NCBI RefSeq assembly: GCF_964194025.1
Contig: NC_134472.1
Span: 73,222,001-73,286,000, forward strand
Reading direction: 5' to 3'
DNA: 64,000 nt
Source: Convolutriloba macropyga
Lineage: Eukaryota
This document shows positions 9,565-61,036 of this stretch, piece after piece. The translations under genes were made by a program, and so were the position numbers. The stretch's first letter is position 1; each line of letters opens with the position of its first letter. Below the pieces are notes generated by a model. It was not told the origin of the DNA. It made no database searches and saw only the letters and a program-made list of their open reading frames with translations.

Positions 9565-10140
9565 GTAAGTATTAGTTCAAACAGGCTGGCTTGCTGCTGG
9601 TTTTTTATCCAACCAGCCGAGTTTTGAGTTTGTTATTTTCTGTATGTTTTGACCGCCAAGCCATAACTAAGTCTCATTATTGATCTCATTATGGTTTTTA
9701 AGACCAGAGGAAGAGTTATGGTGATCCATTCGTTTTAGATTGTTCCCTCATGTTTCCGGAAGTCCTAAATGCCACACTTGATGATTTTGTTCTGTTGCTG
9801 GATCAAACTGAAGAGCCGAGAAAAGTGATTTTTTGTTCGCACCGGTTTTATGGTTTTTAAGTGGGATTATTCTGCTGACTAAAGTTTGTTCTTTCCTTGA
9901 TTGAGCAGGAGTGTTTACACGGCCTGTTGATGAAAATCGTTTTGAAATCACATGTAGAGATAATTTTTAATTGCTCTTGAACGAAGTTCATAGCATTTAT
10001 TATAGCTGCGAAGCTGTAAGCTGAGCGTAGCTATATTGCGGTGCTCTTGGTTTTTACGACTCGAAGAGGAGTATTGGTTTTCTCTCGGTCTTTTTTTACG
10101 ACTCGAAGAGGAGTATTGGTTTTCTCTCGGTTTTTTTTTT

Positions 10141-13100
10141 TACAGGAAGTAGATTTGTTCACGCGGCATTTTGACCTAAAAGCGAAAGTGAGAAAAGCTG
10201 TCTTGGTGAACAGATTTTCGCTAAGCGAGAGAAATTTTTTGATCATGCGCTGCGTTTAGTGAACGACTTTTTGACTTTGAAAAGTAGTTTTTGATTGAAT
10301 TGCACATATAAATAACCGTTTTTAGCCGTTTTTTCGTTTAAGTGGCCCAATTTTTTTGCTTTTAATTTGGTTTCTTGTAGAAATAAATTTTATTCGATAC
10401 TATATTGAAATTTCAACCTCGGAAATTGATGCCACAGTGTTTTGCAGAGCCTGAAAATGCGTTTAAAATTGAAAATTGGCACATATTTCTTGATTTTTTT
10501 AGTTAATTCTTGGCTTTTTTTTCTATTAATTTCTTCACTTTTGAATCTCTTAACCGTCTTTGTGTCAAAAATCAGTTAACATGGCAACTTTTCCTTGATA
10601 ATTCATATACTCAACGCCTCTTTCTACCTCGATGTATTTTTGTTTTATAAAATTTACATATGCTAATCCGATTTTGGTAGTTTTTTCCGATTTTCGTCAG
10701 TTTTTTTGTTTGTATTTTGGTTGTAATTGCTAGAAATAGTCTTTTTGTGCAACATGAGAGACTTTAATTTCGTTTCAATAAGAATTCAATTATTTTTTGG
10801 CGTTAGGTTTTTGAAAAACAGTTAAAACTTTTTCATAAATGCTGTCTTAAAAGTTTTTTGACCTTTTTTTTGCAAAATGTTTCAATATTTCGTTTTTATG
10901 AATTCTGCTTTTTCCTATTTTTTTCTCTTCAGGAGGATAGATCTTTGTATCGGATGACTAGTTATTTTTTCTATGTCTTGAATGCTGAACAATGAAATGT
11001 ATTCGTTTTTCTTGAATTTTTGAAATTGATTTTTAACTTTCAAAAATTAAGAATGTCTTTTTGTTACAGTGTTCCTTACATTGTGCCGATATTCTTCACA
11101 TTCTAGTTAGTATCTTTGTAGCTTTGTCCTGCCACCTACATTTATTTTCGGTATATTGATTTTTTCAGTAGTAAAAAATGATTTCGGCTTTTTCTTAGAT
11201 TTTCGTCATTTCTTTGGTTTGCAATTGATTTCATTCATCATAAGGCAGTACTGAGCGTTTGACAGCAAGCCCTTTGCAAAATTTCCACTTATGACTATTT
11301 ACTGCAGCTTTCTTCCGGCCTTGGTAATATTTTAACCGATTTTTTGCCTTTGAATATTCTTCTACTTATGTCTTTTCTTTGATCAATTTTATTTTTGATT
11401 TAGTATGAAATCATGTTTTCTAGCACATGTACAACAAGGATCAGGTGTGTGTTGTTTTTTGTCTTAATTGCAGTGATTAGAATTGTAATTGTTGGTGTTT
11501 TCTGATTCTTAATTTTTAGGTTTCTTTTCTGAAAAGATTTTAAACTTGGTTCAAACTTAGAACTTAGTTTCTAAGATTATTATCTCCCGTTTGCTTTCGC
11601 GATCTTTTTCAGATTAGAATCATGAAATGTTTGAGGGCAGTTGATAACCTTGTCAGCTTTTTCAGACTATCAAGTTTTTGACCACCTTAATTATTGCGGA
11701 TTTTTTAACGTTGCCAAACGTTTTCAATAATTTAAAGCTTTGCTGCATTTTGTTTCTCTTGGTGACAGTGGTTCAAGTTTCACCAATTTTTAGAGCAGAC
11801 CTGGAGAGGTAGTGAGTTAATGGTTTAATACAAAAGGCAGTGACTTCCGCTGCAATAACGGTTTTGTTAGTGAAGTTTTGACGATTCGAGTTGCTTCCGG
11901 AATTCTTCCGGCTATGTTCTTAAGGTTTTTTTTTTTTACCGGAAGTACTATTCGTTCAGACGATGTTTTGACCTAAAAGCGAAAGCGAGTAAAATTGCAG
12001 TGTGAACTAATTTTTTCTGAGCGAGAGAAGTTTTTTGATCATGCGCTGCGTTTAGTGAATGACTTTTTGACATTGAAAAGTAGTTTTTGACTGAATGACA
12101 CATATATATAACCGTTTTTAGCCGTTTTTTCGTCTAAGTGGCCTAGTTTTTTTGCTTGTAATTTGGTTTTTTGTAGAAATAATTTTTAATCGATGCTATG
12201 TTGAAATGTAAACCCCGGAAATTGTTAGCACAGTATTTTGCATAGCCTGAAATTGCGTTTCAAATGCGAAATTGGCACATATTTCTTGATTTTTTAGTTA
12301 ATTTTTGGCTTTTTTTTCTATTAATTTCTTCATTTTTGGATCTTTTAGCTGTTTTTTGTCAAAAATCAGTTAATATGGCAACTTCCCTTTGATAATTCAT
12401 ATACTCAATGCCTCTTTCTACCTCAATTTTTCATAAAATTGTACATTTGCTAATCCGATTTTCGTAGTTTTTGCAATTTTTTTTTCAGTTTTTTGTTTGT
12501 ATTTTGCTTTTAATTACTAGAAATAGTATTTTGGGGAACATGAGGGACTTTAATTTCGTTTCAATAAAAATTCAATCATTTTTTGGTGTTAAGTTTTTGA
12601 AAAAACAGATAATTTTTTTTCATAAATGCAGTCTTAAATATTTTTTGACCACTTTTTTGCAAAATGTTTCATTGTTTCGTAGGTCTGAATTCTGCTTTTT
12701 CTTGTTTAATTATGTTCAGCAAGCTGGATTTTTGTCTCGAATGATTCGTTGTCTTTTCTATGTCTCGAATGCTGATCAATGAAATGTACTCGTTTTTCTT
12801 GATTGTTTTAAATTTGATCTTTAACTTTCAAAAATCAAGAATTGGTCTTTTTGTTACCGTGTTCCTAACATTGTGTCCATATTCTTCACATTCTTGTTTT
12901 TATCATTCTAGTTTTGTCCTGGCACCTACTTTTGTTTTCGTTATATTGATTTTTTCAGTTGTTAAAAATGAATGATTTCAGCTTTTTCTTAGATCTTGGT
13001 TTCTTCGGTTTGCAATTGATTTAATTCAAAATAGGGCAGTACTGGGAGTTTGCTAGAAAGTCTTTTCAAACATTTCGACTTAATACTATTCATTGCAATT

Positions 13101-15388
13101 TTCTTCCGGGCTTGGTATTGTTTTTAGACGATTGTTTGTCTTTGAATATTATTCTGTTGCTTTTGTTTTTCTATGATTAATTTAATTTTTGAATTAGTAT
13201 GAAATCATGTTGTCTAGCATATATACAACAAAAAAGAATCATGTATTATTTTTGTCTTAATTGCCGTGATTGGAAATCTAATTGTAGTGGTTCTCTGATT
13301 CTTAAGTTTGAGCACTCTTGAATAATTTTGACTTTCCTGCCTTTTTTGAAAAGTTTCTATCTGCCGTTTGCTTTCGCGATCTTTTTGAGATTAGAATCAT
13401 TAATTATCTGAGGGCAATTGATGGCCCTGTCAGCTTTGTCAGGCTATCAGTTTTTTGACCATCCTAAAAATTTCAGACTTTTTTAACGTTACCAAACGTT
13501 TTCAATAATAAAATTTTGCTGCATTTTCTTTCTCTTGGTGACAGTGGTTTAAATTTCACCAATTTTTAGATCAGACCCGTGGAGGTAATGAGTTAATGGT
13601 TTAATACAAAAGGTAATGGCTTCAACTTTTTGTGAAGTTTTGGTGCTTCGAGTCGCTTCTGGAATTCTTCCAGCTATGTTTTTTTACAGGAAGTAGGTTT
13701 GTTCACGCGGCATTTTGACCTAAAAGCAAAAGTGAGAAAAGCTGTCTTGGTGAACAGACTAAGCGAGATAAGTTTTTTGATCATGCGCTCCGTTTAGTGA
13801 ATGACTTTTTGACTTTGAAAAGTAGTTTTTGACTGAATGGCACATAGATAACCGTTTTTAGCCGTTTTTTGGACTAAGTGGCCCAATTTTTTTGCTTTTA
13901 ATTTGGTTTCTCATTGAAATAAAGTTTATTCGATACTTTATTGAAATGTCAACCTCGGAAATTGGTTCCACAGTGGTTTGCAGAGCCTGAAAATGCGTTT
14001 CAAGTTGAAAATTGGCACATATTTCTTGATTTTTTTGTTAATTCTTGGTTTTTTTTCTATTAATTTCTTCATTTTTGGATCTTTTAACCGTCTTTTTGTC
14101 AAAAATCAGTAAATACGGCAACTCCTCTTTGATAATTCATATACTCAACGCCTCTTTCTACCTCGATGTAATTTTGTTTTATAAAATTTACATATGCTAA
14201 TCCGATTTTGGTAGTTTTTTTTCCGATTTTCGTCAGTTTTTTTGTTTGTATTTTGGTTGTAATTGCTAGAAATAGTCTTTTTGAGCAACATGAGGGACTT
14301 TAGTTTCGTTCCAATAAAAATTCAATCATTTTTGGCGTTAGGTTTTTCAGAAACAGTTTAAACTTTTTCATAAATGCAATCTTAAATGTTTTTTGACCAT
14401 TTTTTTTGCAAAATGTTTCAATTTTTCGTATTTATGAATTCTGCTTTTTCCTATTTTTTTGTTCTCTTCAGGAGAACAGACCTTTGTATCGGATGATTAG
14501 TTATCTGTTATATGTCTTGAATGCTGAACAATGAAATGTCTTCGTTTTTCTTGAATTTTTTATTGATTTTTGACTTTCAAAAATCAAGAATATGTTTTTG
14601 TTGGGGTGTTCCTTACATTGTGCCCATATTCCTCGCATTCTAGTTAGTATCATTCCAGCTTTGTCCTGCACCTATATTTATTTTCGGTATATTGATTTTC
14701 AGTTGTTAAAAATGAATGATTTCAACTTTTTCTTAGATTTTCGTCATTTCTTTGGTTTGCATTTGATTTCATTCAACATAAGGCAGTACTGAGAGTTTGA
14801 TAGCAAGCCTGTTCCACAATTTCCACTAAAGACTATTTACTGCAACTTTCTTCCGGCCTTGGTATTAATTTAAGCGATTTTTTGCCTTCTGCTTCTTATG
14901 TCTTTTCTATGATCAATTTAATTTTTGATTTAGTATGCAATATTGTCTAGCATATGTACAACAAGGAACAAGTGTGTGTTGTTTTTTGTTTTAATTGTAG
15001 TGATTAGAATTGTAATTATAGGTGTAATTAAGTTAGTTTCTAAGATTATTTTCTGCCGTTTGCTTTCGCGATCTTTTTCAGATTAGAATCATGAACTATT
15101 TGAGGGCAATTGATAACCTTGTCAGCTTTTTCAGTCTATCAGTTTCTTTTACCTCTTTAATTATTTCGGTTTTTTAATGTTACCAATCGTTTTCAGTGAT
15201 ATAAAATTTTGCTGCATTTTGTTTCTCTTGGTGACAGTGGTTTAAGTTTCAACAATTTTTAGAGCAGACCTGGAGAGGTAGTGAGTTAATGGTTTAATAC
15301 AAAAGGTAGTGGCTTCTGCTGCAATTACGGTTTTGTTACTGAAGTTTTGACGCTTCGAGTCACTTCCGGAATTCTTCCAGGTATGTTT
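10141..15388 (+). repeat. Three head-to-tail ~1.75-kb family C bodies
   Basis: Units start tac(a/c)ggaagta at 10141, ~11937 and ~13685; each ends in variants of ttcgagtcgcttccggaattcttccggctatgtt. Confidence 0.9.
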
Positions 15389-16026
15389 TTTTGTTTCGTC
15401 GTCTGACGCTCTTTTTTCGTTTTACATTGCAAAGCTGAAGAAGTCAAATTTTCTGATTGACTTCTTCCTCTCACTAACGGCATTTGCGCGCGTGTCGTCA
15501 TTTCTCACTCGCTCTAGCAAATGGTGTTTTGCGTGATTAGATTTTGATCATACGTGACTTACCTCACTCATTAAAATGACTTTTGCACTTTAAAACTTAA
15601 GTTTAAATTGAATTTGTTTAAGGTCAAAGGAACTCCTATGTGCAGTAAAGTTTCCTAATAAAAGGCGTCTGTGGAATGAGTTTTAACAAGCTTTATTAAT
15701 TTATCGCTGAATGTTTTTTAGCCTAGTTTTTTGAGCTGCGTCGTTTTTTTTCAACTTAGATCTGTATCTGTTTCTATCTCTTATATGGCACGCAGGTCTA
15801 TTCTTTTGCAGCTATTCCGGCAATCTGCCGGCTATGTTTGTAACCGTGTTGATCTTTTTATGCAAATTTTTTGCATGACCATTTCAAGTTTTTCTTCTAG
15901 AACATTTTTTGACTTCTCAAGTGACTTTTTCACGCTTTTCTTCATTTTTGAGTGATCTCTTTTGCTCTCACTCCGAACTAAAGCTTGCTGCTGAAATAAA
16001 ACCGATTGCAGCAAAGAAAGAAGAAG

Positions 16027-16108
16027 GGCCTGATGGCCGAGTGGGCAGTGCTTCTGGTTTGGGATTGGGAAGTCAATGGTTCGACTCCCGTCGTGGTAAA
16101 TTTTTTTT
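16027..16108 (+). other. tRNA-derived Pol III cassette (A box, B box, T-run) inside a family A HINE; probably not a functional tRNA
   Basis: A box tggccgagtgg 16034-16044; B box ggttcgactcc 16078-16088; T8 at 16101-16108; cloverleaf stems pair poorly. Confidence 0.7.
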
Positions 16109-16207
16109 GCACCCTTAAAGAGAAATTTATCTAGGCTACAGCCCCTGAATTAAATTGCGTCGGCTGTCGTTCAAGATCAATTCTTCCGACATTAGTCGGT
16201 TTATGTT

Positions 16208-16723
16208 TAATAGCAGCGTCAGCAATTCCAGGCGGTTACTTTATCGCTCCTAATTTTTATTTCGTCGAACAGATTTTTATTTTGTCTTACCCGGACTTCT
16301 TGGAATTGGCTTTTCAATGACTTCAGTGACTTCTACTGCTTTGCAGTTAAAATTTGTGTTCGTGACGATATTTCTGTTTCAGGTCAATTGCGTGACTTAC
16401 CTCACTCAACAAAATGACCTCTGAGCTCAATTATGGAACATTAACTAATTAAAAGTCAATAGTGGGCATCTAAGTAGTGCCATATTTATATGCCGTAATT
16501 CCTGAGTAATAGAGTCTTGAGTTTTAATATCGAATATTAATTTTGGAAAAGATTCATCACGGTTTTTTCATTGTAGATCAAATGTGTCTCATAAAAATGA
16601 CCGTCCGAATCTAACCCAAAAAGTCTAGTGGTCTATTAAAAAGCTGGTGGTCGATCTGTCAATCTTATTTCTTTAGTTGTTTCAATTCATGGTAGGCCAC
16701 AAGCGTCTATCGCGGCTATGTTT
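16208..16723 (+). mobile_element. HINE family B copy (3' hairpin deleted), abutting the end of the A element
   Basis: aatagcagc start; blocks shared with 4105-4443; ends gcgtctatcgcggctatgttt. Confidence 0.7.
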
Positions 16724-19760: not shown

Positions 19761-22700
19761 AATTTTTTATGGTGTACAGTGCTGAGGTTATAGTTTGCAG
19801 TGTTGAATCTGAAGGTCTCATTTTTAGGTGAAGAAGCCAATTTTGGGCACACAGATCTCTACTTGACGTTGGCCACTATTCATAGAGATCCTGTTCAAAA
19901 AGATGTTTATTGATGCAACATTTTTGAGCCACAGTTAATAAATGCGCTTGGACAAAGCTTGAATCAATTATTGCAAACGTGTGTCTTTTTTATAAAATTT
20001 TCGCCGGACCAATTTCGTGTAGAACATTGTTTTGATTTCACTTCTCGAGTAACTTTTCGCGTTCGACTTTTGATATATAGTGATTTTTGTTGCGTGCATT
20101 CAGAAATCATGTCTGTTCCTATAATAAAACTGATTGTAAGAGCTGACCGTACATAGACCGTGTAGCGTAGATGTTAAAGTCATCAAATCTCTTCCAAGAG
20201 GTCGCGGATGGGAACCTCTCGCTTGTCAGATATTTTTGGACCACAAAAGTTTCGCTTGCTTCTGCCTCATTCTAATTTTTTTTTACTCGCCTGCCGATCG
20301 AGAGCAATTCGTCGGATATAAGTCGGTTTATGTTTCCTAATGTGAAATTTAACAAAACGCTGAGTTTTAAAAAGTTATCTTTTTACAGCTTTGTTAATAG
20401 CCGCTTTCGATTATATCAACTAGAAAGTTATGATTTTTAACTATTCGTTTTTCGAGAACTTCTGACTTCTTTGGACTTTTGTAAATTGGGTTTTGGACTT
20501 TTGTAAGTTGGACTTTGAACATTTTTCAAAGCGCTGTGAGCTGAATGTTGCTGTATTGCACACCTCAAACAATTTTTTTCACACCTCAAGCAGTAATATT
20601 GTCTCCTCATGCCGTTCTATGACTGCTTAGAGTTTTATTTCAGTTCCCTGAAAAGTTTTGTGGACAACCGTTTTCTATATGACTTATCACCAATACTTGT
20701 TGATAAGTTGGCGACTCAAGGTTCCTCTTAACTGATTCAAATTAAAACTAGAACTTCTATATAGTGAAAGCTGTTACTTGTAAAGCATCGCGACTTAAAT
20801 GTAAACAGCAGTTAATGTTTTCGAGAAGAGTTTACGAAAAAGAGTAGGGTAGTTGTTGATCTTCTGATTTTCAAACGTTTAAGTATCAGCGAAAAAGGAT
20901 GTTCAAGTCATTATCACACTTGAAAAGAAATTGTTTAGGTCATCCTGCTGAACAAAAGTCAAAAGCAAAGGAGAATAAGAAGTTTCTATTAATTTTTCTT
21001 GCCGAGAGAGGGCTAGAAAAATTGGGCGAGACATCGAAATGTTTTACGTGCTGCTCTTTCGAAGCAGCTTTTAATGTTAACTCAGACTTTTTTGCTCAAA
21101 GTGGTTTATTCAATTATGCAAAGAATTAAATGTCCTTTTCAGAGCTGCTATGAAATTTTCAAATTTTTTATGGTGAACAGTGCTGAAGTTATAGTTTGCA
21201 GTGTTGAATCTGAAGGTCTCATTTTTAGGTGAAGAAGCCAATTTTGGGCACACAGATCTCTACTTGACGTTGGCCACTATTCATAGAGATCCTGTTCAAA
21301 AAGATGTTTATTGATGCAACATTTTTGAGCCACAGTTAATAAATGCGCTTGGACAAAGCTTGAATCAATTATTGCAAACGTGTGTCTTTTTTATAAAATT
21401 TTCGCCGGACCAATTTCGTGTAGAACATTGTTTTGATTTCACTTCTCGAGTAACTTTTCGCGTTCGACTTTTGATATATAGTGATTTTTGTTGCGTGCAT
21501 TCAGAAATCATGTCTGTTCCTATAATAAAACTGATTGTAAGAGCTGACCGTACATAGACCGTGTAGCGTAGATGTTAAAGTCATCAAATCTCTTCCAAGA
21601 GGTCGCGGATGGGAACCTCTCGCTTGTCAGATATTTTTGGACCACAAAAGTTTCGCTTGCTTCTGCCTCATTCTAATTTTTTTTACTCGCCTGCCGATCG
21701 AGAGCAATTCGTCGGATATAAGTCGGTTTATGTTTCCTAATGTGAAATTTAACAAAACGCTGAGTTTTAAAAAGTTATTTTTTACAGCTTTGTTAATAGC
21801 CGCTTTCGATTATATCAACTAGAAAGTTATGATTTTTAACTATTCGTTTTTCGAGAACTTCTGACTTCTTTGGACTTTTGTAAATTGGGTTTTGGACTTT
21901 TGTAAGTTGGACTTTGAACATTTTTCAAAGCGCTGTGAGCTGAATGTTGCTGTATTGCACACCTCAAACAATTTTTTTCACACCTCAAGCAGTAATATTG
22001 TCTCCTCATGCCGTTCTATGACTGCTTAGAGTTTTATTTCAGTTCCCTGAAAAGTTTTGTGGACAACCGTTTTCTATATGACTTATCACCAATACTTGTT
22101 GATAAGTTGGCGACTCAAGGTTCCTCTTAACTGATTCAAATTAAAACTAGAACTTCTATATAGTGAAAGCTGTTACTTGTAAAGCATCGCGACTTAAATG
22201 TAAACAGCAGTTAATGTTTTCGAGAAGAGTTTACGAAAAAGAGTAGGGTAGTTGTTGATCTTCTGATTTTCAAACGTTTAAGTATCAGCGAAAAAGGATG
22301 TTCAAGTCATTATCACACTTGAAAAGAAATTGTATAGGTCATCCTGCTGAACAAAAGTCAAAAGCAAAGGAGAATAAGAAGTTTCTATTAATTTTTCTTG
22401 CCGAGAGAGGGCTAGAAAAGTTGGGCGAGACATCGAAATGTTTTACGTGCTGCTCTTTCGAAGCAGCTTTTAATGTTAACTCAGACTTTTTTGCTCAAAG
22501 TGGTTTATTCAATTATGCAAAGAATTAAATGTCCTTTTCAGAGCTGCTATGAAATTTTCAAATTTTTTATGGTGAACAGTGCTGAAGTTATAGTTTGCAG
22601 TGTTGAATCTGAAGGTCTCATTTTTAGGTGAAGAAGCCAATTTTGGGCAGACAGATCTCTACTTGACGTTGGCCACTATTCATAGAGATCCTGTTCAAAA

Positions 22701-25700
22701 AGATGTTTATTGATGCAACATTTTTGAGCCACAGTTAATAAATGCGCTTGGACAAAGCTTGAATCAATTATTGCAAACGTGTGTCTTTTTTATAAAATTT
22801 TCGCCGGACCAATTTCGTGTAGAACATTGTTTTGATTTCACTTCTCGAGTAACTTTTCGCGTTCGACTTTTGATATATAGTGATTTTTGTTGCGTGCATT
22901 CAGAAATCATGTCTGTTCCTATAATAAAACTGATTGTAAGAGCTGACCGTACATAGACCGTGTAGCGTAGATGTTAAAGTCATCAAATCTCTTCCAAGAG
23001 GTCGCGGATGGGAACCGCTCGCTTGTCAGAACTTTTTGGACCACAAAAGTGTCGCTTGCTTCTGCCTCATTCTAATTTTTTTTTACTCGCCTGCCGATCG
23101 AGAGCAATTCGTCGAATATTAGTCGGTTTATGTTTCCTAATGTGAAATTTAACAAAACGCTGAGTTTTAAAAAATTTATCTTTTTACAGCTTTGTTAATA
23201 GCCACTTTCTATTATATCAACTAGTAAGTTATGATTTTTAACTATTCGTTTTTCGAGAACTTCTGACTTCTTTGGACTTTTGTAAGTTGGACTTTGAACA
23301 TTTTTCAAAGCGCTGTGAGCTGAATGTTGCGCTATTGCACACCTCAAACAATTTTTTTCACACCTAAAGCAGTAATATTGTCACCTCATGCCGTTCTTTG
23401 AATGCTTAGAGTTTTATTTTAGTTCCCTGAAAAATTTTGTGAAACACCATTTTCTAAATGACTACCACCAATACTTGGTGATAAGTTGGCGACTTAAGGT
23501 TCCTCTTAACTGATTCAAGTTAAAACTAGAACTTCTATATAATGAAAGCTGTTACTAGTAAAGCATCGCGACTTAGATGTAAACAGCAGTTAATGTTTTC
23601 AAGAAGAGTTTACGAAAAGGAGTAGGGTAGTTGTTGATCTTCTGATTTTCAAACGTTTAAGTGTCAGCGAAACAGGATGTTCAAGTCATTATCACACTTG
23701 AAAAGAAATTGTTTAGGTCATCCTGCTGTACAAAAGTCAAAAGCAAAGAAGAGAATAAGAAGTTTCTGTTCATTTTTTGTGCCGAGAGGGGGCTAGAAAA
23801 GTTGGGCGAGACATCGAAATGTTTTACGTGCTGCTCTTTCGAAGCAGCTTTTAATGTTAACTCAGACTTTTTTGCTCAAAGTGGTTTATTCAAATATGCA
23901 AAGAATTAAATGTCCTTTTCAGAGCTGCTTTGAAATTTTCAAATTTTTTATGGTGTACAGTGCTGAAGTTATAGTTTGCAGTGTTGAATCTGAAGGTCTC
24001 ATTTTTAGGTGAAGAAGGCAATCTTCGGCACACAGGTCTACTTGACTTTGGCCACTATTCATAGAGATCCTGTTCAACAAGATGTTTATTGATGGGATGT
24101 CTTGTGCCCATTTAATAAATGCTCTTGAACAAAGCTTGAAGCAATTATTGCAAACGTGTTTCTTTTTCGTAAAATTTTCGCCGGACCAATTTCGTGTAGA
24201 ACATTGTTTTGATTTCACTTCTCGAGTAACTTTTCGCGTTCGACTTTTGATATATAGTGATTTTTGTTGCGTGCATTCAGAAATCATGTCTGTTCCTATA
24301 ATAAAACTGATTGTAAGAGCTGACCGTACATAGACCGTGTAGCGTAGATGTTAAAGTCATCAAATCTCTTCCAAGAGGTCGCGGATGGGAACCGCTCGCT
24401 TGTCAGAACTTTTTGGACCACAAAAGTGTCGCTTGCTTCTGCCTCATTCTAATTTTTTTTACTCGCCTGCCGATCGAGAGCAATTCGTCGAATATTAGTC
24501 GGTTTGTTTCCTAATGTGAAATTTAACAAAACGCTGAGTTTTAAAAAATTTATCTTTCTACAGCTTTGTTAATAGCCACTTTCTATTATATCAACTAGTA
24601 AGTTATGATTTTTAACTATTCGTTTTTCGAGAACTTCTGACTTCTTTGGACTTTTGTAAGTTGGACTTTGAACATTTTTCAAAGCGCTGTGAGCTGAATG
24701 TTGCGCTATTGCACACCTCAAACAATTTTTTTCACACCTCAAGCAGTAATATTGTCACCTCATGCCGTTCTTTGAATGCTTAGAGTTTTATTTTAGTTCC
24801 CTGAAAAATTTTGTGAAACACCATTTTCTAAATGACTACCACCAATACTTGGTGATAAGTTGGCGACTTAAGGTTCCTCTTAACTGATTCAAGTTAAAAC
24901 TAGAAATTCTATATAATGAAAGCTGTTACTAGTAAAGCATCGCGACTTAGATGTAAACAGCAGTTAATGTTTTCAAGAAGAGTTTACGAAAAGGAGTAGG
25001 GTAGTTGTTGATCTTCTGATTTTCAAACGTTTAAGTGTCAGTGAAACAGGATGTTCAATTCATTATCACACTTGAAAAGAAATTGTTTAGGTCATCCTGC
25101 TGTACAAAAGTCAAAAGCAAAGAAGAGAATAAGAAGTTTCTGTTCATTTTTTGTGCCGAGAGGGGGCTAGAAAAGTTGGGCGAGACATCGAAATGTTTTA
25201 CGTGCTGCTCCTTCGAAGCAGCTTTTAATGTTAACTCAGACTTTTTTGCTCAAAGTGGTTTATTCAAATATGCAAAGAATTAAATGTCCTTTTCAGAGCT
25301 GCTTTGAAATTTTCAAATTTTTTATGGTGTACAGTGCTGAAGTTATAGTTTGCAGTGTTGAATCTGAAGGTCTCATTTTTAGGTGAAGAAGGCAATCTTC
25401 GGCACACAGGTCTACTTGACTTTGGCCACTATTCATAGAGATCCTGTTCAACAAGATGTTTATTGATGCGACGTCTTGTGCCCATTTAATAAATGCTCTT
25501 GAACAAAGCTTGAAGCAATTATTGCAAACGTGTGTCTTTTTCGTAAAATTTTCGCCGGACCATTTTCGTGTAGAACATTGTTTCGATTTCACTCCTCGAG
25601 TAACTTTTCGCGTTCGACTTTTGATATTTAGTGATTTTTGTTGCGTGCATTTAGAAATCATGTCTGTTGCTATAATAAAACTGATTGTAAGAGCTGACGG

Positions 25701-26724
25701 TACATAGACAGTGTAGCGTTGATGTTAATGTCATCAAATCTCTTCCAAGAGGTCGCGGATGGGAACCTCTCGCTTGTCAGAACTTTTTGGACCACAAAAC
25801 TTTCGCTTGCTTCTGCCTCATTCTAATTTTTTTACTCGCCTGCCGATCGAGATTAATTCGTCGGATATTAGTCGGTTTATGTTTCCTAATGTGAAATTTA
25901 ACAAAACGCTGAGTTCTAAAAAAGTTATCTTTTTACAGCTTTGTTAATAGCCGCTTTCTATTATATCAACTAGAAAGTTATGATTTTTTAACTATTCGGT
26001 TTTCGAGAACTTCTGACTTCTTTGGTCTTTTGTAAATTGGGTTTTAGACTTTTGTAAGTTGGACTTTGAACTTTTTCCAAAGCGCTGTGAGCTGAATGTT
26101 GCTGTATTGCACACCTCAAACAATTTTTTTCACACCTCAAGCAGTAATATTGTCTCCTCATGCCGTTCTATGACTGCTTAGAGTTTTATTTCAGTTCCCT
26201 GAAAAGTTTTGGGGACAACCGTTTTCTATATGACTTATCACCAATACTTGTTGATAAGTTGGCGACTCAAGGTTCCTCTTAACTGATTCAAATTAAAACT
26301 AGAACTTCTATATAGTGAAAGCTGTTACTTGTAAAGCATCGCGACTTAAATGTAAACAGCAGTTAATGTTTTCGAGAAGAGTTTACGAAAAAGAGTAGGG
26401 TAGTTGTTGATCTTCTGATTTTCAAACGTTTAAGTGTCAGCGAAACAGGATGTTCAAGTCATTATCACACTTGAAAAGAAATTGTATAGGTCATCCTGCT
26501 GAACAGAAGTAAAAAACGAGAAGAGAATAAGAAGTTTCTGTTCATTTTTCCAGATGAGAGAGGGCTAGAAAAGTGTGTCGAACAAGTCTAAGACATCGAA
26601 ATGTTTTACCTGCTGGTCCTTCGAAGCAGTTTTTAATGTTAACTCTTTCTTTTTTGCTCAAAGTGGTTTTATTCAAATATGCAAAAAATTAAATTTCCTT
26701 TTGAGAGCCGCTTTTGAAGTTTTC
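19761..26724. repeat. Tandem array, five copies of a ~1.37-1.40-kb unit, each containing a complete ~400-bp family A HINE
   Basis: Units start at 19761, 21162, 22561, 23942 and 25316; identical short ORFs recur at this period; HINE in unit 1 at ~19936-20335. Confidence 0.97.
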
Positions 26725-26965
26725 GTATTTTTTTTTTTGGCTTTTAGATACGATGCTAGCTATTTTCTTGTCATTTTGACATATTTGAACGTTTTTGAGC
26801 AGTCGTTTTTTTCTCATGGTATTACACTCTACTGCGTTTAGTACTAGGTTTACTACGATTTTTGGTTTTACCGATTTGGTTGTTCCGTTTTTGTATTGCT
26901 CCCATTTTGTTATTTTTTGGGCGATAGGAACAATAAATTGCAGTCATTTCTCAAGATATTTGTTT

Positions 26966-32318: not shown

Positions 32319-33215
32319 GACTACACAAATCCAGCCAAGACTGCTTAAAGGAAGTCAGCCAGTTTCTCAGAAAGTTCATTGACGTCACTGCAAAATCAGA
32401 ACAAGCGAGTGAAATCTGTGAACATGCAATTGCAATGACTGTTGATATTCTAGTCAGCTTGGCGCTTCTTAAGTATTCTACAAATGAACTCCTGGAAATA
32501 ATTCTGATGATTCTCAGCACTTCCGATGTTATCAGATCTGCAAAAATTGTCAAGTTGAGAATAGATAGAATTTGTAAACAGTACTATTCCACGTCACACG
32601 ATGAAATTGTTCAGAGCCTCAGCAAAACAGAAGGGGCTACGATTACAGTCGAGTCAGCTGTTCAAGTCATTTTGCACTGCATGGCTTCCAAAGCGTTTAA
32701 ACTGTCGCAACCGAGTTTGACGGCGCCCAAAATGAAGCAAAATTTATCAGTTTGGGGCAACGGGAAAGAAAGTGAGAATTTTACGGCAAATTTTGAAGCC
32801 CTCACTAACGGATGTCTCAGAGCCCATGCGGGAAATTCTATCAATTACTACATAGACTTTAGAGGACAATTATGGGTTGAGAGATTGGGCGACGAAGCGG
32901 AAGGCATTGTTGGTCCGGTCGAACCCAAGTCCAGTTTCAACCACATTTGCTTTCTTAAAGTGAGCTCGTCTTTAAACCAGGCTTCAGGAGACACTCTCTT
33001 TCTATCGACAACAGGCGATGTGTACAAGCTGTCAAATCAGACTATTTGGGAAGCGAAGTGCGACAATTTGATGTCTGTATTAAGTCCAAGTATCATTCGA
33101 GGCAACCTGGACAAGACTAGAGTGGTATCTATCTCAGCTGGGTTTAAGCACTGTGCTTGTGTCACAGAAAATGGTGCTTTGTTCACGTGGGGTGCTGGAA
33201 ACATGGGTCAACTGG
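32319..33215 (+). CDS. HERC1: HERC1 exon 2 (start of RCC1-like domain 1)
   Basis: tttttttag acceptor; DCLKEVSQFLRK; ISAGFKHCACVTENGALFTWGAGNMGQLG RCC1 repeat; donor gtaaat. Confidence 0.9.
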
Positions 33216-33439
33216 GTAAATTTTTTAATTTGAAGTTCTTGCGTAAACCTGCAAGAGAATTGAGTTTAAGCGCCAACTCGAGAGGGGATAGAGCCCAAAA
33301 TTAATAATAGCTCGCCCAAAAAGTGGGGAGATGTATATAGAAGCTGAATAGATCGAGTGATAATGTATCAGAATGATTGCTTCAATTTTGAAGCTGAGCT
33401 ACTATGTAACCCAATGGGAGGTGACTTAATTGATTAATT

Positions 33440-33966
33440 AATAGCCGCCCTCATCTTCTCAGCCGGCTATTATAGCGCTCCTTTTTTTTACTTCGCCAAA
33501 CTTTTTTTCGCTTTACCCATTTTGCCACTTTTTCGACATTTTGCGTGAAATCTTTTTGACTTCTCTAGGCTAGTTTCACTCTTCTGTCATTCTGCTCAAA
33601 GTCCTTTTAAACAGCAGATGCTCAGCAAAGCAATTCAAAATGAAGAGAGTCAGTATTAAAAAAATCAAAGTCAGAATAGAAACGTGATAAACCCATAAAA
33701 CCCATTTTTAGATGCCCGGTACTTGAACTTTGTTCTCATAAGTTTTAATTACTATCTATAATGCTTATTGGTATTGATACTAGACCCTGTAGCCTCTCAC
33801 TGAGAGTCAGAAGTATGTTCAATTACGAAATGACATCAAAATAAATCGCACTTAATAATGTTTTTATACAAAAATCAATTTTTGTTGATATTTTCTTTTC
33901 TTGCAATCTCAATAGAGTTATGGGAATCAACGGTGGCTGTTTTCCGGCAATCTGCCGGGTATGTTT
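33440..33966 (+). mobile_element. HINE family B subfamily copy with no nested insert (empty counterpart of 36680-38863)
   Basis: aatagccgccctcatcttctcagccggctatt...ctccttttttttacttcgcc...ccggcaatctgccgg-gtatgttt. Confidence 0.9.
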
Positions 33967-36679: not shown

Positions 36680-38863
36680 AATAGCCGCCCTCATCTTCTC
36701 AGCCGGCTATTATAGCGCTCCTATTTTTACTATTCAAAGAATTTGAATTGTATTGGGGCGCTGTCTTTTTTTACGACTCGAAGAGGAGTATTGGAGAAGT
36801 CCTTTTTTTTTAATCAATTTTATTGGACTGATTTTTAAAGCGGGAAATGAAACGCGTGAAAAAATATGGAGTGATTTTGGCGCTGAACAAAAATGAAGAG
36901 CGGAGTGAAAAGAGAGTGGTTTTTGTTCATACCGCTGTTTTTGAGAGAGCGAGAAATTGATGTGTGAAAAAATTTTCTCTAAGCGAGCGAAGTTTTTTTG
37001 TTCACATGCGGCATTTTAAAGCAATTTTTTTTTCATTTATTTTGGTTAAGAGGTTTGGTTATTGTTTTGTTTTGATTTTAGGCTGGTTTTGGTAGTGGTT
37101 TGAAGGTTTCTGGAAATTCATATTAATTTTATGATAATTCGGAGGTTTTTAATGTATTTTGCTGATTTTCGGGCTAATTTTTGCGTTTTTTTGACGATTA
37201 TTTTGTTTTACTGGCTCAAATGGGTATTGAAGAAACCCCTTCTATTTGAGCAATTTTATGATAACAATTGGTTACAGATTTGTGGGTAAGAATCATTTTT
37301 TGTTGAGAAATATGACAAAAAAATGGCGAAAATTGGAACTTTTTTTCTTATTTTTTTTTGCAGTTTTTCGTTTATTTTACTGTTTTTATTTAAGTTTCTT
37401 CGCCTATTATGACTTGCCTATTGTTTTGCGAGCATCTGGATACCCTATTGGCTGAAGGGATTTTTTCTTTGGATTTATATGTTTTTGAAATATTAAAAAA
37501 TTTAGTAACTTTTTCCCGTTTTTCAGTGAAAGTTGTTTTTAAGAGCATTTTTTTCATAATTTTAGCCTAAAGTATTTTTTCAAAATTCACGTAAGTTGTT
37601 TTTGTAAGTACTAGTTGTTTTGATGAAGTTATTTTGGCAGAGATAGTTTTTTCGGGATCTCAATTTATAACAAAATTGGATCAGAATTTTTATCATATTT
37701 TAACAGATTTGATTTTATCGTTTTTACTTTTTGTTTCATGACTTTGTTTCAAGATAATCATAAATCAGTGAAGGCACGTTTTGTTTGATGAGTAGTTGGA
37801 TGGCGTTCAAATGGATTTTCACTTCGAGTCGTTTCCGGAATTCTTCCGGCTATGTTTTTTTTAAGATCTGTTCACACATTTTCATGATTTTTGAAGTCAA
37901 ATTGGAGTGGTGATTCTGGTCACGCCGAAACAGGAAATGGAGCGAAAAAGCGAGTGGTTTTGCGGTGTGAATTTTTTTCGCTCTAATTTTAAAGTAGAGT
38001 GAGAAAACGGTGTTTGAACAAAAATTCGGTTTCTTGGTAGTGGTTTTTTGTTCACTTGCGGCAAATTCACTCTGATTTTTACTGTTTTTTCGATTTTTTG
38101 GATCGGATTTTTTTCTAAATAGTTTTCCCAATCCATTCACAGCTCATTCTGGACCGAGTTTTTTGTTAGAATCAAAATTACATATCTCACTAGTTGTTTT
38201 TTGTTCTCCCTAGCAGCATTTTGACATTGATTTTCTGTTTTTTTTTGTTTTTTTTTCATCTGATTTTTTTTTAGAAATGGTTTTCCCAATTCCCTCATTG
38301 TCCGTTCTAGTTCTAGTTGTTTGTTAAGTAAATGAAAATTCTTTGAATTGTACGTCAGGACTTGTCCTGCTATGTTTTTTACTTCGTCGAACTTTTTTTC
38401 GCTTTACCATTTTGCCGCTTTTTCGACATTTTGCGTGAAATCTTTTTTGACTTCTCTAGGCTAGTTTCTCTCTTCTCTCATTCTGCTAATAGTGATTTTG
38501 AACATCAGTTGCTCAGCAAAGCAATTCAAAATGAACAGAGTCAGTATAAAAAATTGAACTCAGAATTAGAAACGGGATAAGCCCCTAAAGTCCAATTTTA
38601 GATGCCCGCTATTTGAACGTCGTTCCTATACGTCCTATTAGTTACCATCTCTTATGCTTATTGGTATTGATAGTTGTCCCTGTAGCCTCTCTCTAAGAAA
38701 CAGAAGTATGTTCAATTACGAAATGCCATCAAAATAAATCGGACTTAAAAAATGTTTATGTACAAAAATCTTTTTTTGTTTCAATACCTTCTATTCTTTC
38801 AATCCCAACCATGCTTATTGGAATCAACGGCGGCCATTTTCCGGCAATCTGCCGGGTATGTTT
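36680..38863 (+). mobile_element. Three-level HINE nest B(F(C)) in HERC1 intron 3
   Basis: 5' ends B 36680, F 36729, C 36773; 3' ends C 37857, F 38377, B 38863; removing the inserts regenerates the 33440 and 54509 copies. Confidence 0.92.
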
Positions 38864-42744: not shown

Positions 42745-45700
42745 GAGCTGAGCATGTTGTGGCTGTGAACAAGACAGGTTTAACATTTGCGTGGGGTTCA
42801 AATCCTCTGGGACAATGCTTGAGCAGCTGGCAGTGTGATACCATTGTGGTTCCGACCATCGTACCCTGTGTCAAATCTCAAACTGTTCGACATGTCAGCG
42901 CTGGAACCTCACATAGCATTGCGTGCTATGAAATCTTAGACGATGACGATGAAGATGTAGTAATCAAACGGATGTTTGAGAACTCCTCAGGAACTGTTTG
43001 TGAGCAAGTGCTAACATTGCAAAAGATTTTAGAACACGTGTTGGCGACCACGCCATCGGTTAGTAATAGCAACCAATTCAATCAGAAATCATTTTCGGTT
43101 TTCACCGACTGTTTCAAGCTAATGTACTACCTGTTTTCCTCAGACAACGCAATACCATTTAAACACCAGCAGAAAGTGGAACTGAGAAATTTGCTGTTTA
43201 AATTTGTAGATATTTTCGAAGAGTCGCGTTCTGATTTCAAAGATTACCTCGATAGATTAGTGCTGTGCAGTTTTGAACAGCTCTTCGCTTCGATTGAGGA
43301 CAAGTTTCAAATCTTATCTAATTGTTTGGACCGAGTTAAGCTGTCACGGAAAAGCAGCTCTGAGGATACGGGAGAGACAGCTATCAAGTTGAAACCGTCG
43401 GAATCCTTAAAATTGACAATGATAGTCGACAGTCTATTTAAAGATCGAATGTACATGCAAGATTATTTCAAAAATTGTCTAGAAGATGCCGTGAAATTGA
43501 CGACGTCGGTCTTGCAGTCAGTTGTTGACGTGAGCAAAGAGGCGGCTGGTTACGGAGGCAGCCATGAAACATTTCAGAAGTTCACTCGGCAGAATTTAGC
43601 AAGGCTCAGTAAGGTGCTCACTATTAATTTACAGGCTGTCTGTAGCATTGGCGATCACGAGAATTTAGCTCTTCTTAACGAACACGTGAACTTCATTTTT
43701 CAGCTGCTGCAAAATTTGCCTTTAGACGCAACCCGTGATAAAGTTCTAGAAAATGTTTTCGAAATCGTGACCGATACATGTCACTGTTGTCTAGTTTTGT
43801 CGACCGAGTTCACAGACGTCGCCACAAATTTGACCAAAGTTTTGAAAGTTTGCTCAGCTTGGATGAATAATTTGTCCTCTTCGGAAAATTTTGAAAGTTC
43901 TTGTCTGTTGAAATTGGTGGAGACATTGCAACTCACTGCCGCTTTTTACCTTGGAGTCGTAACCTGTTGCACGCGCTCAACAGCTCAGAATTCTGCGAGC
44001 ACAACTGAAAAGCTGGGAAGAAAAAGCAAATTTTCATCTGAGTCGAGCTTACAAAACGTATTTAACGCAATTGTACACTCACAGATTTTTGATCTCACAG
44101 AAAAAGAAAACGTCCTGGACGAAGATCATAGAAAGATAAAGTCAGCTCTTGAATACATGAAGTCTTGTTTGAGTGGATTCAAAGCTACCTCAAGTGGCGA
44201 TTCCTCAGAAGTGTTTTTGGACTCATCTGAAAATTCCCAAAACTCGGTTACAATCTCTGCTGAGATGACAAATGCATTCGGAGCGTTTTACGAGCACATG
44301 ATGCAACATGCTATTCAACTTAGTTGGAGGTCGTCGACAATTTTGGAAGACGAGCATCTTAATTTGATGTCTAAAATATACTTGGCGACCTTGGTTCATT
44401 TCAGTCGTTTAGAATCAACTGATAAAGCAAGTCCAGAAGTATTACAATTGGTGTACAAGGAGGTATTCAGTGCTAGAATGAAGTTGTTGCAATTGAACGC
44501 GGTTAACATTATGCCCGACGAAAGCATCGGTAATGATGACAACAATTTGGAGCTTAAGAATGAATCTTTGTCTAATCCTGTCAGAAGCGAAACCTTCAAA
44601 AAGGCAGTCTGTCTCATCACAAATGTCTGTATATCAATGGTTACTTCGCTACGCATGAGATCGGTAGAGAAAAGTGGATCCAAGACTTTTGTCAAGGGCA
44701 TCTGCGGATTGCTGCAAAATATCACAGCAGAAATAGTGGACAATCAAAGTGATATATCAAACAACGTCATTGAAGAAATTGATGCGTTGACTCAGATGCT
44801 GGAAACTGAAAGGACGAAAAGTGAAACAGAACTTAAAAAACTGCGTGAAGCAAAGCTTCGGATTCAGTTTGTCTTAGCAACTTCAAAAGCAGAACAGGCT
44901 AAACGGGAAACGTTGCTTAAAATGAGTTCCTTTTTTGTCCGAGGCATGTGTGTAAACTCTCTTTCCGGCGAATTACCCAATAGTGACGCAGCTATTATGT
45001 CACCCGAAGTGCGGAAGAATATCAGTCGTGAAAAACTTGAAATTGCAGAATCGAGCTTGACTGCTGATCTTACGCAGAAAGAAAAACTGAGCTTTCTGAG
45101 GGTTTTGATTGGCCTGGACTGCTTATCAACCCCTGAAGTTCTAGCAAGCGATAAAGTGTGGACGGCTTTTGTTTGTGAAATGCGAGATAAATTTGACGTG
45201 TCAACAGCGTTCTTTCCGAAAGAGTTTTACGACCCAATTATGGCCTCACCTTTAGCGTTTTCCTGGGCTTTTCGATCTATAGTGTTGAATGCGAAAGCCT
45301 TGAGCGACGTAAAGTTGAAAAAGTTTGTGTGGAAGTCAGTACTGGATAAACTAGAAATGTTTGCAACTCTCAAGATCGAAGGATTCAATCATGACTCAGA
45401 TCCGGATGACGTAATCAATAGATTTTTGGTTACTGAGGCGAAACAAAGCACCTTAGTTAGGTTTAACAACGATGCAATGATGGCGCAAGACCTAACAAGC
45501 ACAATTTATATGGTCTTTCAGCTTATTTCGGTCGATGGATTAGCAGAAGGCGAGATTGCTGAAAAATTGATAAAAGAACTGCTAAGGTTAGTAGATTGCT
45601 CGGCTGATGAAAGTAGGTTGCTGTACACGGTGGAAGTTGCTTTCAAAATTATGGTTCTGACAACTGTTAAAGAGCTCCTGTCACGATTCTCGGCAGAATT

Positions 45701-48700
45701 TTCAGAAGATGTGAAAATTTCAGTCATTTCACGCTTGATGAGCTGCATCAATGCGCAAACATGGATTTGGCCGAAGTTCACGTCACTGAGGAAACTGCTC
45801 AAGAAAAAGTCAGAATGGCTCGATATCCCCGAATGCGGTTTCAAACCAGCACTCCAAACGAACAACAAATGCTCTTTAACTGATGATCGACGCGAAATTA
45901 CACGTACTAACCCGAGTATCGCTTACTACATGGTGAACTGTCCGATGTCTTTCGGATGTTTTTCATGGCAAATTGAAGTGGTGGACGAACGTAACTCTGG
46001 AACCGAGTCGCTGAGTCTTGGAATTGCCCAAAAGCCGAAGTTCAAAATGTCTGCGGAGGAAGGGCAATTGGAAGGGCTCTCCTGGTTGTATAGAAGTTTT
46101 ACTGGAAATTTAGTTCCGTTGAGTGTATCTGCTTCTGGACATTTACAGCCCTATGGAAAAGGAGATATCATAACGCTGGTTTTCCACGTCGATTCTCGAT
46201 CACTGTACATTCGTAAGAACTACGACCCGTTTCAACTTGCATTTGAAGAAGTCAAAACTTCTGTTCCACTTTATCCCGTTGTGGTTTTTCACACCACGCA
46301 CACTTGTCGACAGAAATTGAAGCTGAACCATCTACACTTTTGTCAGATTTGCCCGCTCAGCGAGCCAGTGTTCCAGCAGTGCAAAGCAGGGTTGGCGTCC
46401 GATGCTTGTGCTTCAGTTGAAGCTATCAGAGGTTTGATAACGACACTACATGTTAATTCAGAATGGACAGCATCTATTGAGACGCAGCTTATTCAGCCTT
46501 TTAAATCAATCGATGACAGTAAAGCGATGCCGATTTATAAATTGATTCACAGTCCTCTCTGGAGCAGCTTAGTTGTCCTGGGAGGTATTGACGATTCCTT
46601 CTTCGTTGGTCGATCCTGCTTTGACAAACATAATTTAAGTTCAAGAGACGCGAGCAGTAGGATGCTAGTGTCTGGTGGCTCAAGAAATGCACACAATTTT
46701 GAAGTGTCCGCCAGTTCGATCACAGAAAACAAAGTCACATTGGAACTCAAAACAGTGACCAAATGTACTCTTGACCTTGGCTCTTTAGGGTTCAGCACGG
46801 AATCGGCATCTTTCGTTGTTAGGAAATTAAGCCCGGATATTTTGAGTTTTCTATTAGAGATGTGCGATTTTGAGGGCCATGGAATTTTTAATTATCCGCA
46901 GTGTGATAACTCGAAGATGAAACCCAAAGTGGGTTCTGGTTTGACTCAAGTTCTGGATCCTGAGATTTCTTCGGCGGTGCAAGATGCAATAAACGTAATT
47001 GATGCAGCATCAGGAATTGATAAACCTGAGGACGGCAGTTTTGAAATGAGTGCCGAAGATTCGTTTTCCTTAATTTGCCTCAAAACTGTTGCGATGAAAG
47101 CTCTACATAATAGTCTTATTATGCTTCATAATCACGACTTGCTTACAACAGATTCCGGGTATCGCGAATTTCTGTCCAAAGTGATGAAAAGTTGTCTGAA
47201 CTCTGACTCCATCCCCTCGCCTGCTGCTAAAAACTTTAACTTGCCCACGATAAGCCACGTGTTGTTGAAGAAAACGTTCAAACAATATTTCAATCGTGTT
47301 TTGAATGATAAAAATTTTGGCCCTGTATTGTCTGATTCGTCGATGCGATTTGTACCAGGAATTCAACCAAGTCTACCAGGGTTCGAAAACAGCTCTTTGA
47401 GCAGCTTTTGGAATCCAGTTGGTCCGGACATTAGCGCCAATGGGAATCCGCGCTATGTTCGATTCCCGCCGTTGCCACGAGCACCAACAACGGGTGAACA
47501 GCAACCTAACAACTCGATGATGTCATCGTATATTAACGACACAGATATCATGTATACGTTGACCCAAATGGGTTTCAGTGCCAACAGAATTCGAGCCGCA
47601 ATGCGCTCATTGCCTATCATTGGTTCCCGAGCAATTTCGAGATCTGTAAAACTTAACGCAATTATAACATGGCTTCTCGAAAATCAAGAATCGTCCGAAC
47701 AAGATGCGAGCGAGAGCACGATTTTACCGCAATCGACGTCAAGAGAGGGTGCTAATAACAGCCGTAGAAGCTTAGCTCGAGGACTGCCGAGTTTGGATGA
47801 CCTTTTTGCTGATGGAAGTGAAGACTCAGAATTAGTTCAAGAGTTGTTATCGCCTTGGACTTGGACTGATCCTTGGAGTCTCAATCCGGCAGCTTTGGGA
47901 TTGCCTTCCGCGAGCTCTGATGCTGCAATTAGAGCGAGTAACGACAATCGAATGTCAAATGAATTGAGGCGTCGGAGAGTTCGAATTGTGCACGACGTTG
48001 ATAGAGGACCGCAACCATCATCAACCAATCGCCCGAGTGAAAACTCGACTTTTGAGTCATTAGAGTCAATGCTGGTGCGTACGGCAACTACCCCATTTTC
48101 TGAAATACCACGACCTAGGTTTAGTGGGGAGCCTTCTTTCTTCGACGAAATGATTCAACAAGAATCCGACCAAACTCTGAGGGAAGATGCTAACTTCCTG
48201 GAGCAGTTGCAAAGAAGTCGCATGCAGCAACAGGAAACTGAAGAATCGTCTTCATTCAATCGTCAGTTTGCGTCAACATCACAAGAAGAGACGTCGTCAG
48301 TTGTGGCTTCGGGATCCGTCGCATTCTGTGAGTTCTGCGAGCAAAGAGTGGATAATTTTTTTGAACATGCAGTGTCTTATCACGGTTGTAAAAGTGTTCA
48401 AGAATGCTTACTTTACAGTTCAAATGGCAAATGTACCGGAGGCAGATGTATCGATACGTGCGGACGTTTGCGGCGCTCTAAAATACAAGGGAAGTATTGG
48501 TTCGCGTTTTGCACGAGATGTAAGCTGAACGGTCCTGCTGTAAATAGTTTAACTCCTTTTCCGTTACCAGCACAAAGTCCAGAAAACTCGCCCACCTCAT
48601 CAGCTCCGCCAGAATTTAACAGATGCAACTCAATATCCTCGAAAATAGCTGTTTGCAGACGGGAAATCGGTCTGTCGCCTAAGCGTCGGCACGCGGATCC

Positions 48701-60424: not shown

Positions 60425-60651
60425 GTAAGTTTCCTGCTTTATTTTTCTCTTACCGAGTTTTATTTGTCTCTGCTGACATTGTCTTTTAAGGTCCATATCT
60501 TGTGCAGTTGCAGAGCGATTTGGTTTTTTGAGCAGTTGTTTGTGCTGTTTGCAAATACTTTTTTAGCTAGTGTTACCTGATATCTATAGTTGATTTGAGC
60601 ACATTCTGTTTCCCGGTTTGGAGCTGATGCGTATTAGTGCTAATAATTATT

Positions 60652-61020: not shown

Positions 61021-61036
61021 ATTTCATCATATTTAG

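Follow-up and report, generated by a model that had tools for sequence, protein, structure and literature searches.

Target choice by Helitron2/Helentron transposons has so far been known only as insertion 'between T's'. The HINE/DINE-1 elements, which are non-autonomous Helentrons, have a general T-rich target, and their clustering has been noted (Thomas et al. 2014, PMC4067079; Yang and Barbash 2008, PMC2374699). In Fusarium, the Helitron2 elements FoHeli1/2 repeat their first 31-85 nt and can carry up to five 5' termini (Chellapan et al. 2016, PMC5148889; PMC13342296, 2026), stacks that have been explained by self-insertion near the 5' end together with onward transposition of the composites (PMC5148889, PMC13342296). 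Nested Helitrons of maize likewise yield multi-terminus composites that move on (Dong et al. 2011, PMC3288121). Here we analyze a 64,000-nucleotide stretch of AT-rich animal DNA (hereafter the window), located at 73.22 Mb of contig C5 (G000:C5) in the 1.18-Gb genome of Convolutriloba macropyga. It harbors, at 9968-16207, a 6-kb nest of short non-coding rolling-circle-type transposons in which guests sit in the run of T's (T-run) behind the 5' terminal module of their host. Thousands of copies in this genome show a rule narrower than the one known so far, namely the first T-run behind a resident terminal module. Our reading, to which we assign a probability of roughly 0.7, is that these are non-autonomous Helentron/Helitron2 (HINE)-type elements for which this first T-run is a preferred integration site. 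The rule accounts for both the stacked termini and the dense co-oriented clusters that confuse transposon annotation.

Architecture of the nest and anatomy of its elements

Read directly on the + strand, the bracket structure of 9968-16207 is A[B1[C1[C1-C2 pair]]]. The nest opens with the 5' terminal module of family A (9968-10001), a palindromic subterminal repeat recognized by sequence and fold (hairpin, -5.1 kcal/mol, z -2.98) that has 89% identity to the start of an uninterrupted A copy (60643-60689). Directly behind it stands the B1 5' module (10001-10055), consisting of a hairpin, a 15-nt spacer ending in CTCTTGG and the first 5 T of the landing T-run; this module heads 2,500 copies genome-wide. 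The 5' module of an outer C1 copy with the first part of its T-run follows (10056-10097), and then an inner C1 (10098-11918) with its 5' module, an 11-T run, body, 3' subterminal repeat, hairpin CCGGAATTCTTCCGG and CTATGTT. The two C modules, starting at 10056 and 10098, are identical across 33 nt. Next comes a copy of the C2 variant (11919-13680), which has a body and a 3' end and only the tail of a 5' module (CTTAAGG and 12 T, 11919-11937). The interrupted hosts are then completed from the inside out: the rest of the outer C1 (13681-15387; remaining T-run, body and a 3' end whose hairpin has one mismatch), the rest of B1 (15388-15838; remaining T-run (TTTTTGTTTCGTCG...), body, 3' subterminal repeat GCAGCTAT, hairpin CCGGCAATCTGCCGG and CTATGTT) and the rest of A (15839-16207; body and a 3' end made of TCGTTCAAGATCAAT, hairpin CCGACATTAGTCGG and TTTATGTT), all on the + strand.

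Host sequence picks up again after the 3' hairpin and CTATGTT of the guest, and target duplication is absent. The B1 continuation from 15388 onward is what directly follows the T-run in empty B1 copies (33 of 100), and behind the B1 3' end the sequence gtaaccgtg...ctttttatgcaaatttttt agrees with that found after the hairpin of the uninterrupted A copies at 60652 (60652-61021, + strand) and 59223. A preliminary description of this locus had reported four stacked 5' termini (A, B-type, C, C), 3' termini in reverse order, each carrying the reverse complement of its 5' subterminal repeat, and the return of A sequence after the B 3' end. All of this was borne out; the 3' ends lie at 11918, 13680, 15387, 15838 and 16207, and the coordinates first given for the 5' and 3' termini were right within 1-2 bases. 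The three C units are co-linear, with 80.6% identity from neighbor to neighbor and 86.6% between the first and the third in a self-comparison; Tandem Repeats Finder, run with a period limit of 500, missed these 1.7-kb units. No open frame of at least 150 amino acids occurs in 9969-16208, which therefore has no coding capacity, and ARAGORN and Rfam made no calls over the nest region. By eye, 16030-16100 in the body of the A copy looks tRNA-like, where neither program makes a call.

Two further copies on the + strand of the window show the landing T-run in its empty and filled states. An empty B2 (33440-33965) retains its landing T-run intact (CTCC T8 ACTTCG), and a second nest, B2[F[C']] (36683-38862), has the same bracket order, with F in the T-run of B2 and C' in the T-run of F. 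The B2 remainder of the latter (38375-38863) is 85% identical to the empty copy; the guest divides its T-run, and no duplicated bases flank the insertion. Comparison of unoccupied with occupied copies of B1 and B2 elsewhere in the genome agrees, and B2 flanks end in T's, as expected of the insertion without a target-site duplication that is established for Helentron/DINE-1 elements.

The middle of the nest is less orderly. Bracket nesting, the core of the Russian-doll order first proposed, stands, but five 3' ends face four 5' modules, and the C triple includes a C1-C2 pair rather than a clean doll. Intact C2 modules read ACGACTCGAAGAGGAGTATTGGTTTT-CTTAAGG-T-run-ACCGGAAG (sampled loci L001, L002 and L016), of which only CTTAAGG and the T-run survive in the window, where they adjoin the inner C1 at its 3' end. 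This junction, CTATGTT joined to CTTAAGG, is also present in L003 and L013; L003 retains, upstream, the 27 nt that open the C2 module, and L013 has lost them, as has the window. The window C1 is 94.4% identical to the L003 C1, against a compared value of 87.7%, and the window C2 unit is 94.8% identical to the second unit of L013, against a compared value of 73%, indicating separate histories for the C1 and the C2 halves at the three loci. Judging from the junctions, a C1 copy inserted into the short internal T-run of a C2 module, and the adjacent identical 26-nt module heads have fused to one at two of the three loci (the window and L013).

All families share a 5' layout of a 30-50 nt terminal module, a short GC-containing spacer and then 8-14 T. 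For A, B and F this module is a subterminal repeat that reads as a palindrome. Terminal hairpins of 7-10 bp form in A, B1, B2, B3 and F and are followed by 10-17 unpaired bases and the T-run. The 5' module of family C has no convincing hairpin (-2.8 kcal/mol, z -0.27), so the idea of a landing site behind the 5' hairpin of each family needs rewording: the site lies behind the 5' module, whether or not that module folds. The 3' ends consist of the reverse complement of the 5' subterminal repeat, a GC hairpin of 5-6 bp and (C/T)TATGTT, with the stem 7 nt before the terminus in all five families. The 5' and 3' subterminal repeats are ACGACTCGAAG and CTTCGAGTCG in family C, ATAGCTGC and GCAGCTAT in B1, ATTGCTCTTGAACGA and TCGTTCAAGATCAAT in A, and TTCAAAGAATT and AATTCTTTGAA in F. 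One explanation of the landing site that we considered and rejected is a pseudo 3' end. In A, B and F, one arm of the 5' palindrome, the 3' one, is a further copy of the 3' subterminal repeat and points the same way; the T-run comes 10-17 nt after this arm, much as the cleavage site comes 23-25 nt after the 3' repeat. This cannot be a general rule because family C has no palindrome and is nevertheless a good host.

Landing sites across the genome

Loci were sampled with the C 5' end and the start of its body as the sole query (33 loci). In at least 20 of the 33, the guest's 3' end gives way to the body of the host and then to the host's own 3' end, which identifies these structures as true nests and not as chimeras of a foreign 5' end with C. 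The roughly 45 C 5' ends at these loci all lie behind 5' modules, except for one in a body T-run (L012) and those in a head-to-tail array (L014). Composites of the FoHeli type, with stacked 5' ends and a single 3' end, do not fit the window nest or at least 20 of the 33 loci, where every host 5' module is matched by its own body and 3' end beyond the guest. Nor do the three C units of the window form a rolling-circle tandem array of complete head-to-tail units, as no 5' module stands between them. Such an array does exist in L014 (G000:C11:55357001-55367000), with at least five complete C copies at a period of about 1,815 bp. Its type of junction, CTATGTT-T-ACGACTCG, occurs 29 times genome-wide and gives the exact termini of family C; the joint is as precise as concatemers or circles of a rolling-circle element would make it. 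Another repeat in the window (19761-26733) comprises five tandem 1.4-kb copies with 93-96% identity, each made of an A-like element and about 1 kb of other DNA, and is a segmental tandem duplication rather than a rolling-circle array.

For the genome-wide contexts, counts were read by eye from tool tables; for family C we used exact pattern counts, with the first 100 sites in coordinate order as an unselected sample. The 22-mer of the C 5' module has 4,374 exact occurrences. It stands behind CTCTTGG and a T-run (the tails of B1 and B3) in 781 cases, behind GCGCT... and a T-run (the tails of F and B2) in 1,848, behind a C tail in 184 and directly behind a 3' end in 29. Reversed control patterns gave 0 matches, as against 781, 1,848 and 184 for the junction patterns, which excludes chance. 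Within the sample of 100, 72 sites belong to these tail and 3'-end classes; 20 of the other 28 were fetched, and 3 are repeats of fetched structures. Variant 5' modules (B4, B1-like, B2-like, A-type T-run, F' and C') precede 18 of the 20 fetched copies, one is unclear (L043) and one has no upstream module (L049). Overall, 93 of 95 examined C copies are nested behind a 5' module, and in the junction patterns at least 5 T always remain upstream of the C guest.

Family F, with about 8,400 copies, behaves similarly: in an unselected sample of 100, a 5' module is the site of 82, with 77 sitting behind one and 5 within an F module. A 3' end directly precedes another 11, and the remaining 7 are elsewhere. 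In contrast, an equal sample of B2 had ordinary DNA, unrelated to the elements, on its flanks in about 87 cases; about 7 copies followed a 5' module or hairpin and about 6 a 3' end. These insertion contexts divide the families into near-obligate guests (C, C' and F) and generalist hosts (A, B2 and B3), with B1 in between. The targeting proposed in the preliminary description has to be narrowed: it is close to an obligate habit in C, C' and F, whereas A, B2 and B3 lie mostly in ordinary T-rich DNA. Likewise, the landing site is not confined to the 5' side, as sites directly behind 3' ends are used too.

Seen from the hosts, the landing runs are largely filled. Among 100 unselected B2 modules, 38 were empty, 49 held F, 3 held C, 6 held a B-family element and 4 were otherwise altered; the corresponding sample of B1 gave 33 empty runs, 48 with F, 16 with C and 3 with B3, B1 or A. 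Occupancy thus amounts to 58% of B2 and 67% of B1. Guests are not spread over T-runs in proportion to their abundance, an outcome that had been named in advance as speaking against a preferred site. Runs of at least 5 T number 4 in A, 5 in B1, 7 in B2, 13 in F, 26 in C' and 37 in C, and essentially all C and F guests use the first one of their host. About 249 other T-runs of at least 8 T on the element strand in 271 kb hold a single guest (that in L012); an automatic tally of empty landing sites relied on loose tail matching and was unreliable, so that only its count of other long T-runs is used here. Compared with T-runs of equal length, the landing run is enriched more than 100-fold. A preferred site behind the 5' terminal module, with both ends of the host left intact, is therefore supported as first proposed.

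Integration at the landing run and its alternatives

If nesting results from integration, incoming elements of the same superfamily would enter the first T-run of the host in the same orientation, splitting the run, leaving at least 5 T upstream, duplicating no target and keeping both host termini intact. C, C' and F would use this run, or T's directly behind a resident 3' end, almost exclusively, and the A and B families would enter mostly ordinary T-rich DNA and act as hosts. Repeated insertions would then build bracket-ordered stacks such as A[B1[C1[C1-C2]]], in which adjacent identical 5' modules may collapse, and compound units would probably be copied onward from their outer ends. Movement would presumably depend on a Rep-helicase transposase as in HINEs (PMC4067079), and a transposase bound at a resident end, or unwinding from it, could make the nearest T-run the favored single-stranded target. 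Directly seen are the strand- and orientation-specific nesting at one run and, as a second landing class, the sites behind 3' ends.

Several observations weigh against this reading. A search with Pfam Helitron_like_N, in which two families were followed, yielded no Rep-helicase element whose ends match; the chemistry of transposition is thus deduced from the anatomy of the elements. T-run lengths mutate easily, which makes exact cut points inside the runs unreadable. Short-read contigs (four runs, 9400-10800) stop near 9988, a repeat edge, and reveal neither presence or absence of the nest nor variant stacks. That C and F are specialists but B2 a generalist is unexplained if one transposase serves all; the difference may reflect different transposases or target information in the DNA of the guest itself. 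Lastly, F fills about half of the B1 and B2 copies (48-49%), and the B1(F) junctions are nearly uniform at 6 T (exactly 6 T in about two thirds of them), a pattern suggesting that compound units were copied, not that insertion happened thousands of times over. Co-mobilized compounds therefore probably inflate the nest counts.

Taken further, the latter point leads to an unlikely though not negligible alternative, in which a few nests founded by chance were amplified as compounds from their outer ends and the apparent site preference is inheritance. Such compounds should stay mobile, since both host ends are intact, and whole nests are duplicated locally in L003 and L006. However, at least 35 different pairings of host and guest were seen, and the analogous T-run is the site in every one of them. 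B1 is host to C1, C2, F, F', B3, B1 and A; B2 to C1, C', F, F', B1, B2 and B3; B3 and B4 to C1, C2 and F; F to C1, C', B1 and F; C to C and B1-like elements; and A-type hosts to B1, C, B3 and B2-like elements, with B1 at the identical spot, directly behind the A hairpin, in two A subfamilies (the window and L016). Pairwise distances show no correlation between hosts and guests (Mantel r -0.30 across 8 B1(C) nests, -0.13 across 5 B2(C) nests), and in these nests the guests are more diverged (about 9%) than their hosts (3-5%). The number of combinations and the lack of correlation mean that a few copied compounds cannot explain the pattern, contrary to the descent from one or two ancestral nests that the preliminary description had held up against its own proposal. 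In addition, the share of C copies found away from a 5' module is only about 2%, a figure that inheritance alone cannot yield across at least 12 host lineages.

The co-orientation of all partners and the position of all junctions in T-runs would also suit copy-choice or unequal recombination at homopolymers during rolling-circle replication or repair, with no integration involved. Local recombination or slippage evidently occurs, given that the 26-nt C2 head is lost in the window and L013 but present in L003, and true head-to-tail C arrays exist (L014; the 29 junctions). Yet microhomology would use the 4-37 other runs of a host equally, and those are empty; two precise switches per nest would be needed, with the host restored in register, and the guests have complete termini of their own. 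We thus regard recombination as improbable. A simple preference for the longest T-run is less probable still. In A, B1, B2, F and C no run, or almost none, is longer than the landing run, so that its position behind the module could be a coincidence, but the 39 other runs of at least 10 T in the 271 kb, like the wider set of about 249, carry at most one guest, only 1-2 of the 95 C copies lack an upstream module, and B1 enters A between ATTATT and G, which is not a long run.

Returning to integration at the landing run, the specialists C and F could tentatively be viewed as hyperparasites, themselves non-autonomous, that seek out either the 5' leader or the 3' end of further non-autonomous elements. 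The bacterial HUH transposons of the IS200/IS605 group, such as IS608, employ a Y1 transposase and read a tetranucleotide target by base pairing with the element; IS608 inserts in a strand- and orientation-specific manner next to a defined short sequence, has subterminal hairpins, and its target resembles its own cleavage site. The target of the hyperparasites might similarly be set by guest DNA acting like the IS608 guide sequences, or else by the rolling-circle transposase on resident ends. If this were true, there would be three tiers, consisting of the autonomous element, a host element resembling a miniature inverted-repeat transposable element and the guest, and the genome would offer a natural catalog of more than 10,000 site-specific integrations from which to read Helentron-type target rules.

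The Pfam search returned 90 matches in the genome. At L062 (G000:C10:43499561-43509560), positions 1536-8939 hold an intact frame of 2,468 amino acids with an OTU protease, a Helitron Rep and a PIF1 helicase, one of several copies on one strand of C10 at 43.25-43.64 Mb. As a partner this frame (C10:43.50 Mb) found no support, as it shows neither hairpin+TATGTT ends nor 5' modules. The same holds for a relative of 2,509 amino acids on C2, which shares no DNA with the C10 frame. Another Rep family is abundant and contains introns; its copies at C5:77.50 Mb and C1:83.18 Mb are 99.2% identical and lose homology at ...GGGCCTGCTAG, just before TT; the family ends in ...GCCTGCTAG before TT, like a canonical Helitron, and an A'-type 3' end 1.6 kb beyond it is a separate small element.

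Orientation is uniform well beyond single nests. The window has 19 hairpin+TATGTT ends on the + strand and 0 on the - strand, and module matches in the 33 loci are all on the strand of the C copy. In a list of B2 copies from G000:C1, 0.4-18.4 Mb, consecutive copies 10-60 kb apart were, by eye, on the same strand in 23 of 24 cases, and those 60-200 kb apart in 8 of 20. Replication fork direction, strand-specific feedback through T-runs or transcription may underlie co-orientation over tens of kilobases. The window transposons also share their direction with a neighboring gene, a single + strand frame of 3,816 amino acids (42759-54209) for a HERC-like E3 ubiquitin ligase with RCC1-like, SPRY, WD40 and HECT domains, upstream of which a further RCC1-like exon lies on the same strand (32435-33301).

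Significance and comparison with known systems

A transposon homing to a fixed site inside other transposons is a rare case. The nests indicate that non-autonomous elements can specialize on other elements as safe havens while the host element is still movable, and such nesting is a route to long composite and tandem repeat units (satellites).

The closest relatives in anatomy are HINE/DINE-1. Like these, the elements described here are non-coding, have subterminal inverted repeats with the 3' one set back, carry a short stem-loop near the 3' terminus and insert at T-rich or TT sites without duplication and with variable boundary T's; very high copy number and clustering are shared as well, and the palindromic 5' repeat recalls mite HINEs. 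Unlike for HINE/DINE-1, no Rep-helicase-endonuclease partner could be linked to them, and neither a fixed landing site inside other elements nor families that are nearly always nested is described in those papers (PMC4067079, PMC2374699). Similarity to IS608 lies in strand- and orientation-specific insertion beside a defined short sequence, in the hairpins at the ends and in a target that resembles the cleavage site of the element itself; the Y1 transposase and the base-paired reading of the target belong to the bacterial system. Nested long terminal repeat retrotransposons of plants (PMC6911290) are alike in the non-random position of guests inside hosts, although they belong to another transposon class with another mechanism, and their preference is regional rather than for a single site.

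Maize Helitrons share nesting that gives units with several 5' or 3' ends. However, they are canonical (A/T target, CTAG end), no fixed insertion position has been reported for them and their inner 3' ends are degenerate. The stacked 5' termini themselves have their nearest counterpart in FoHeli1/2, and it is here that the claim of an undescribed, ordered cross-family targeting must be qualified, because stacking by self-insertion has been published for fungal Helitron2. FoHeli1/2 comprise a handful of copies of one autonomous family, usually with several 5' ends and one 3' end. In contrast, the present system involves thousands of non-autonomous copies that nest across families at one defined T-run, mostly with matched 3' ends, and it includes specialist guest families. 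New in the present system are nesting across families, a landing site that is one defined T-run, guest families that are close to obligate, an occupancy of 58-67% and a scale of more than 10,000 copies.

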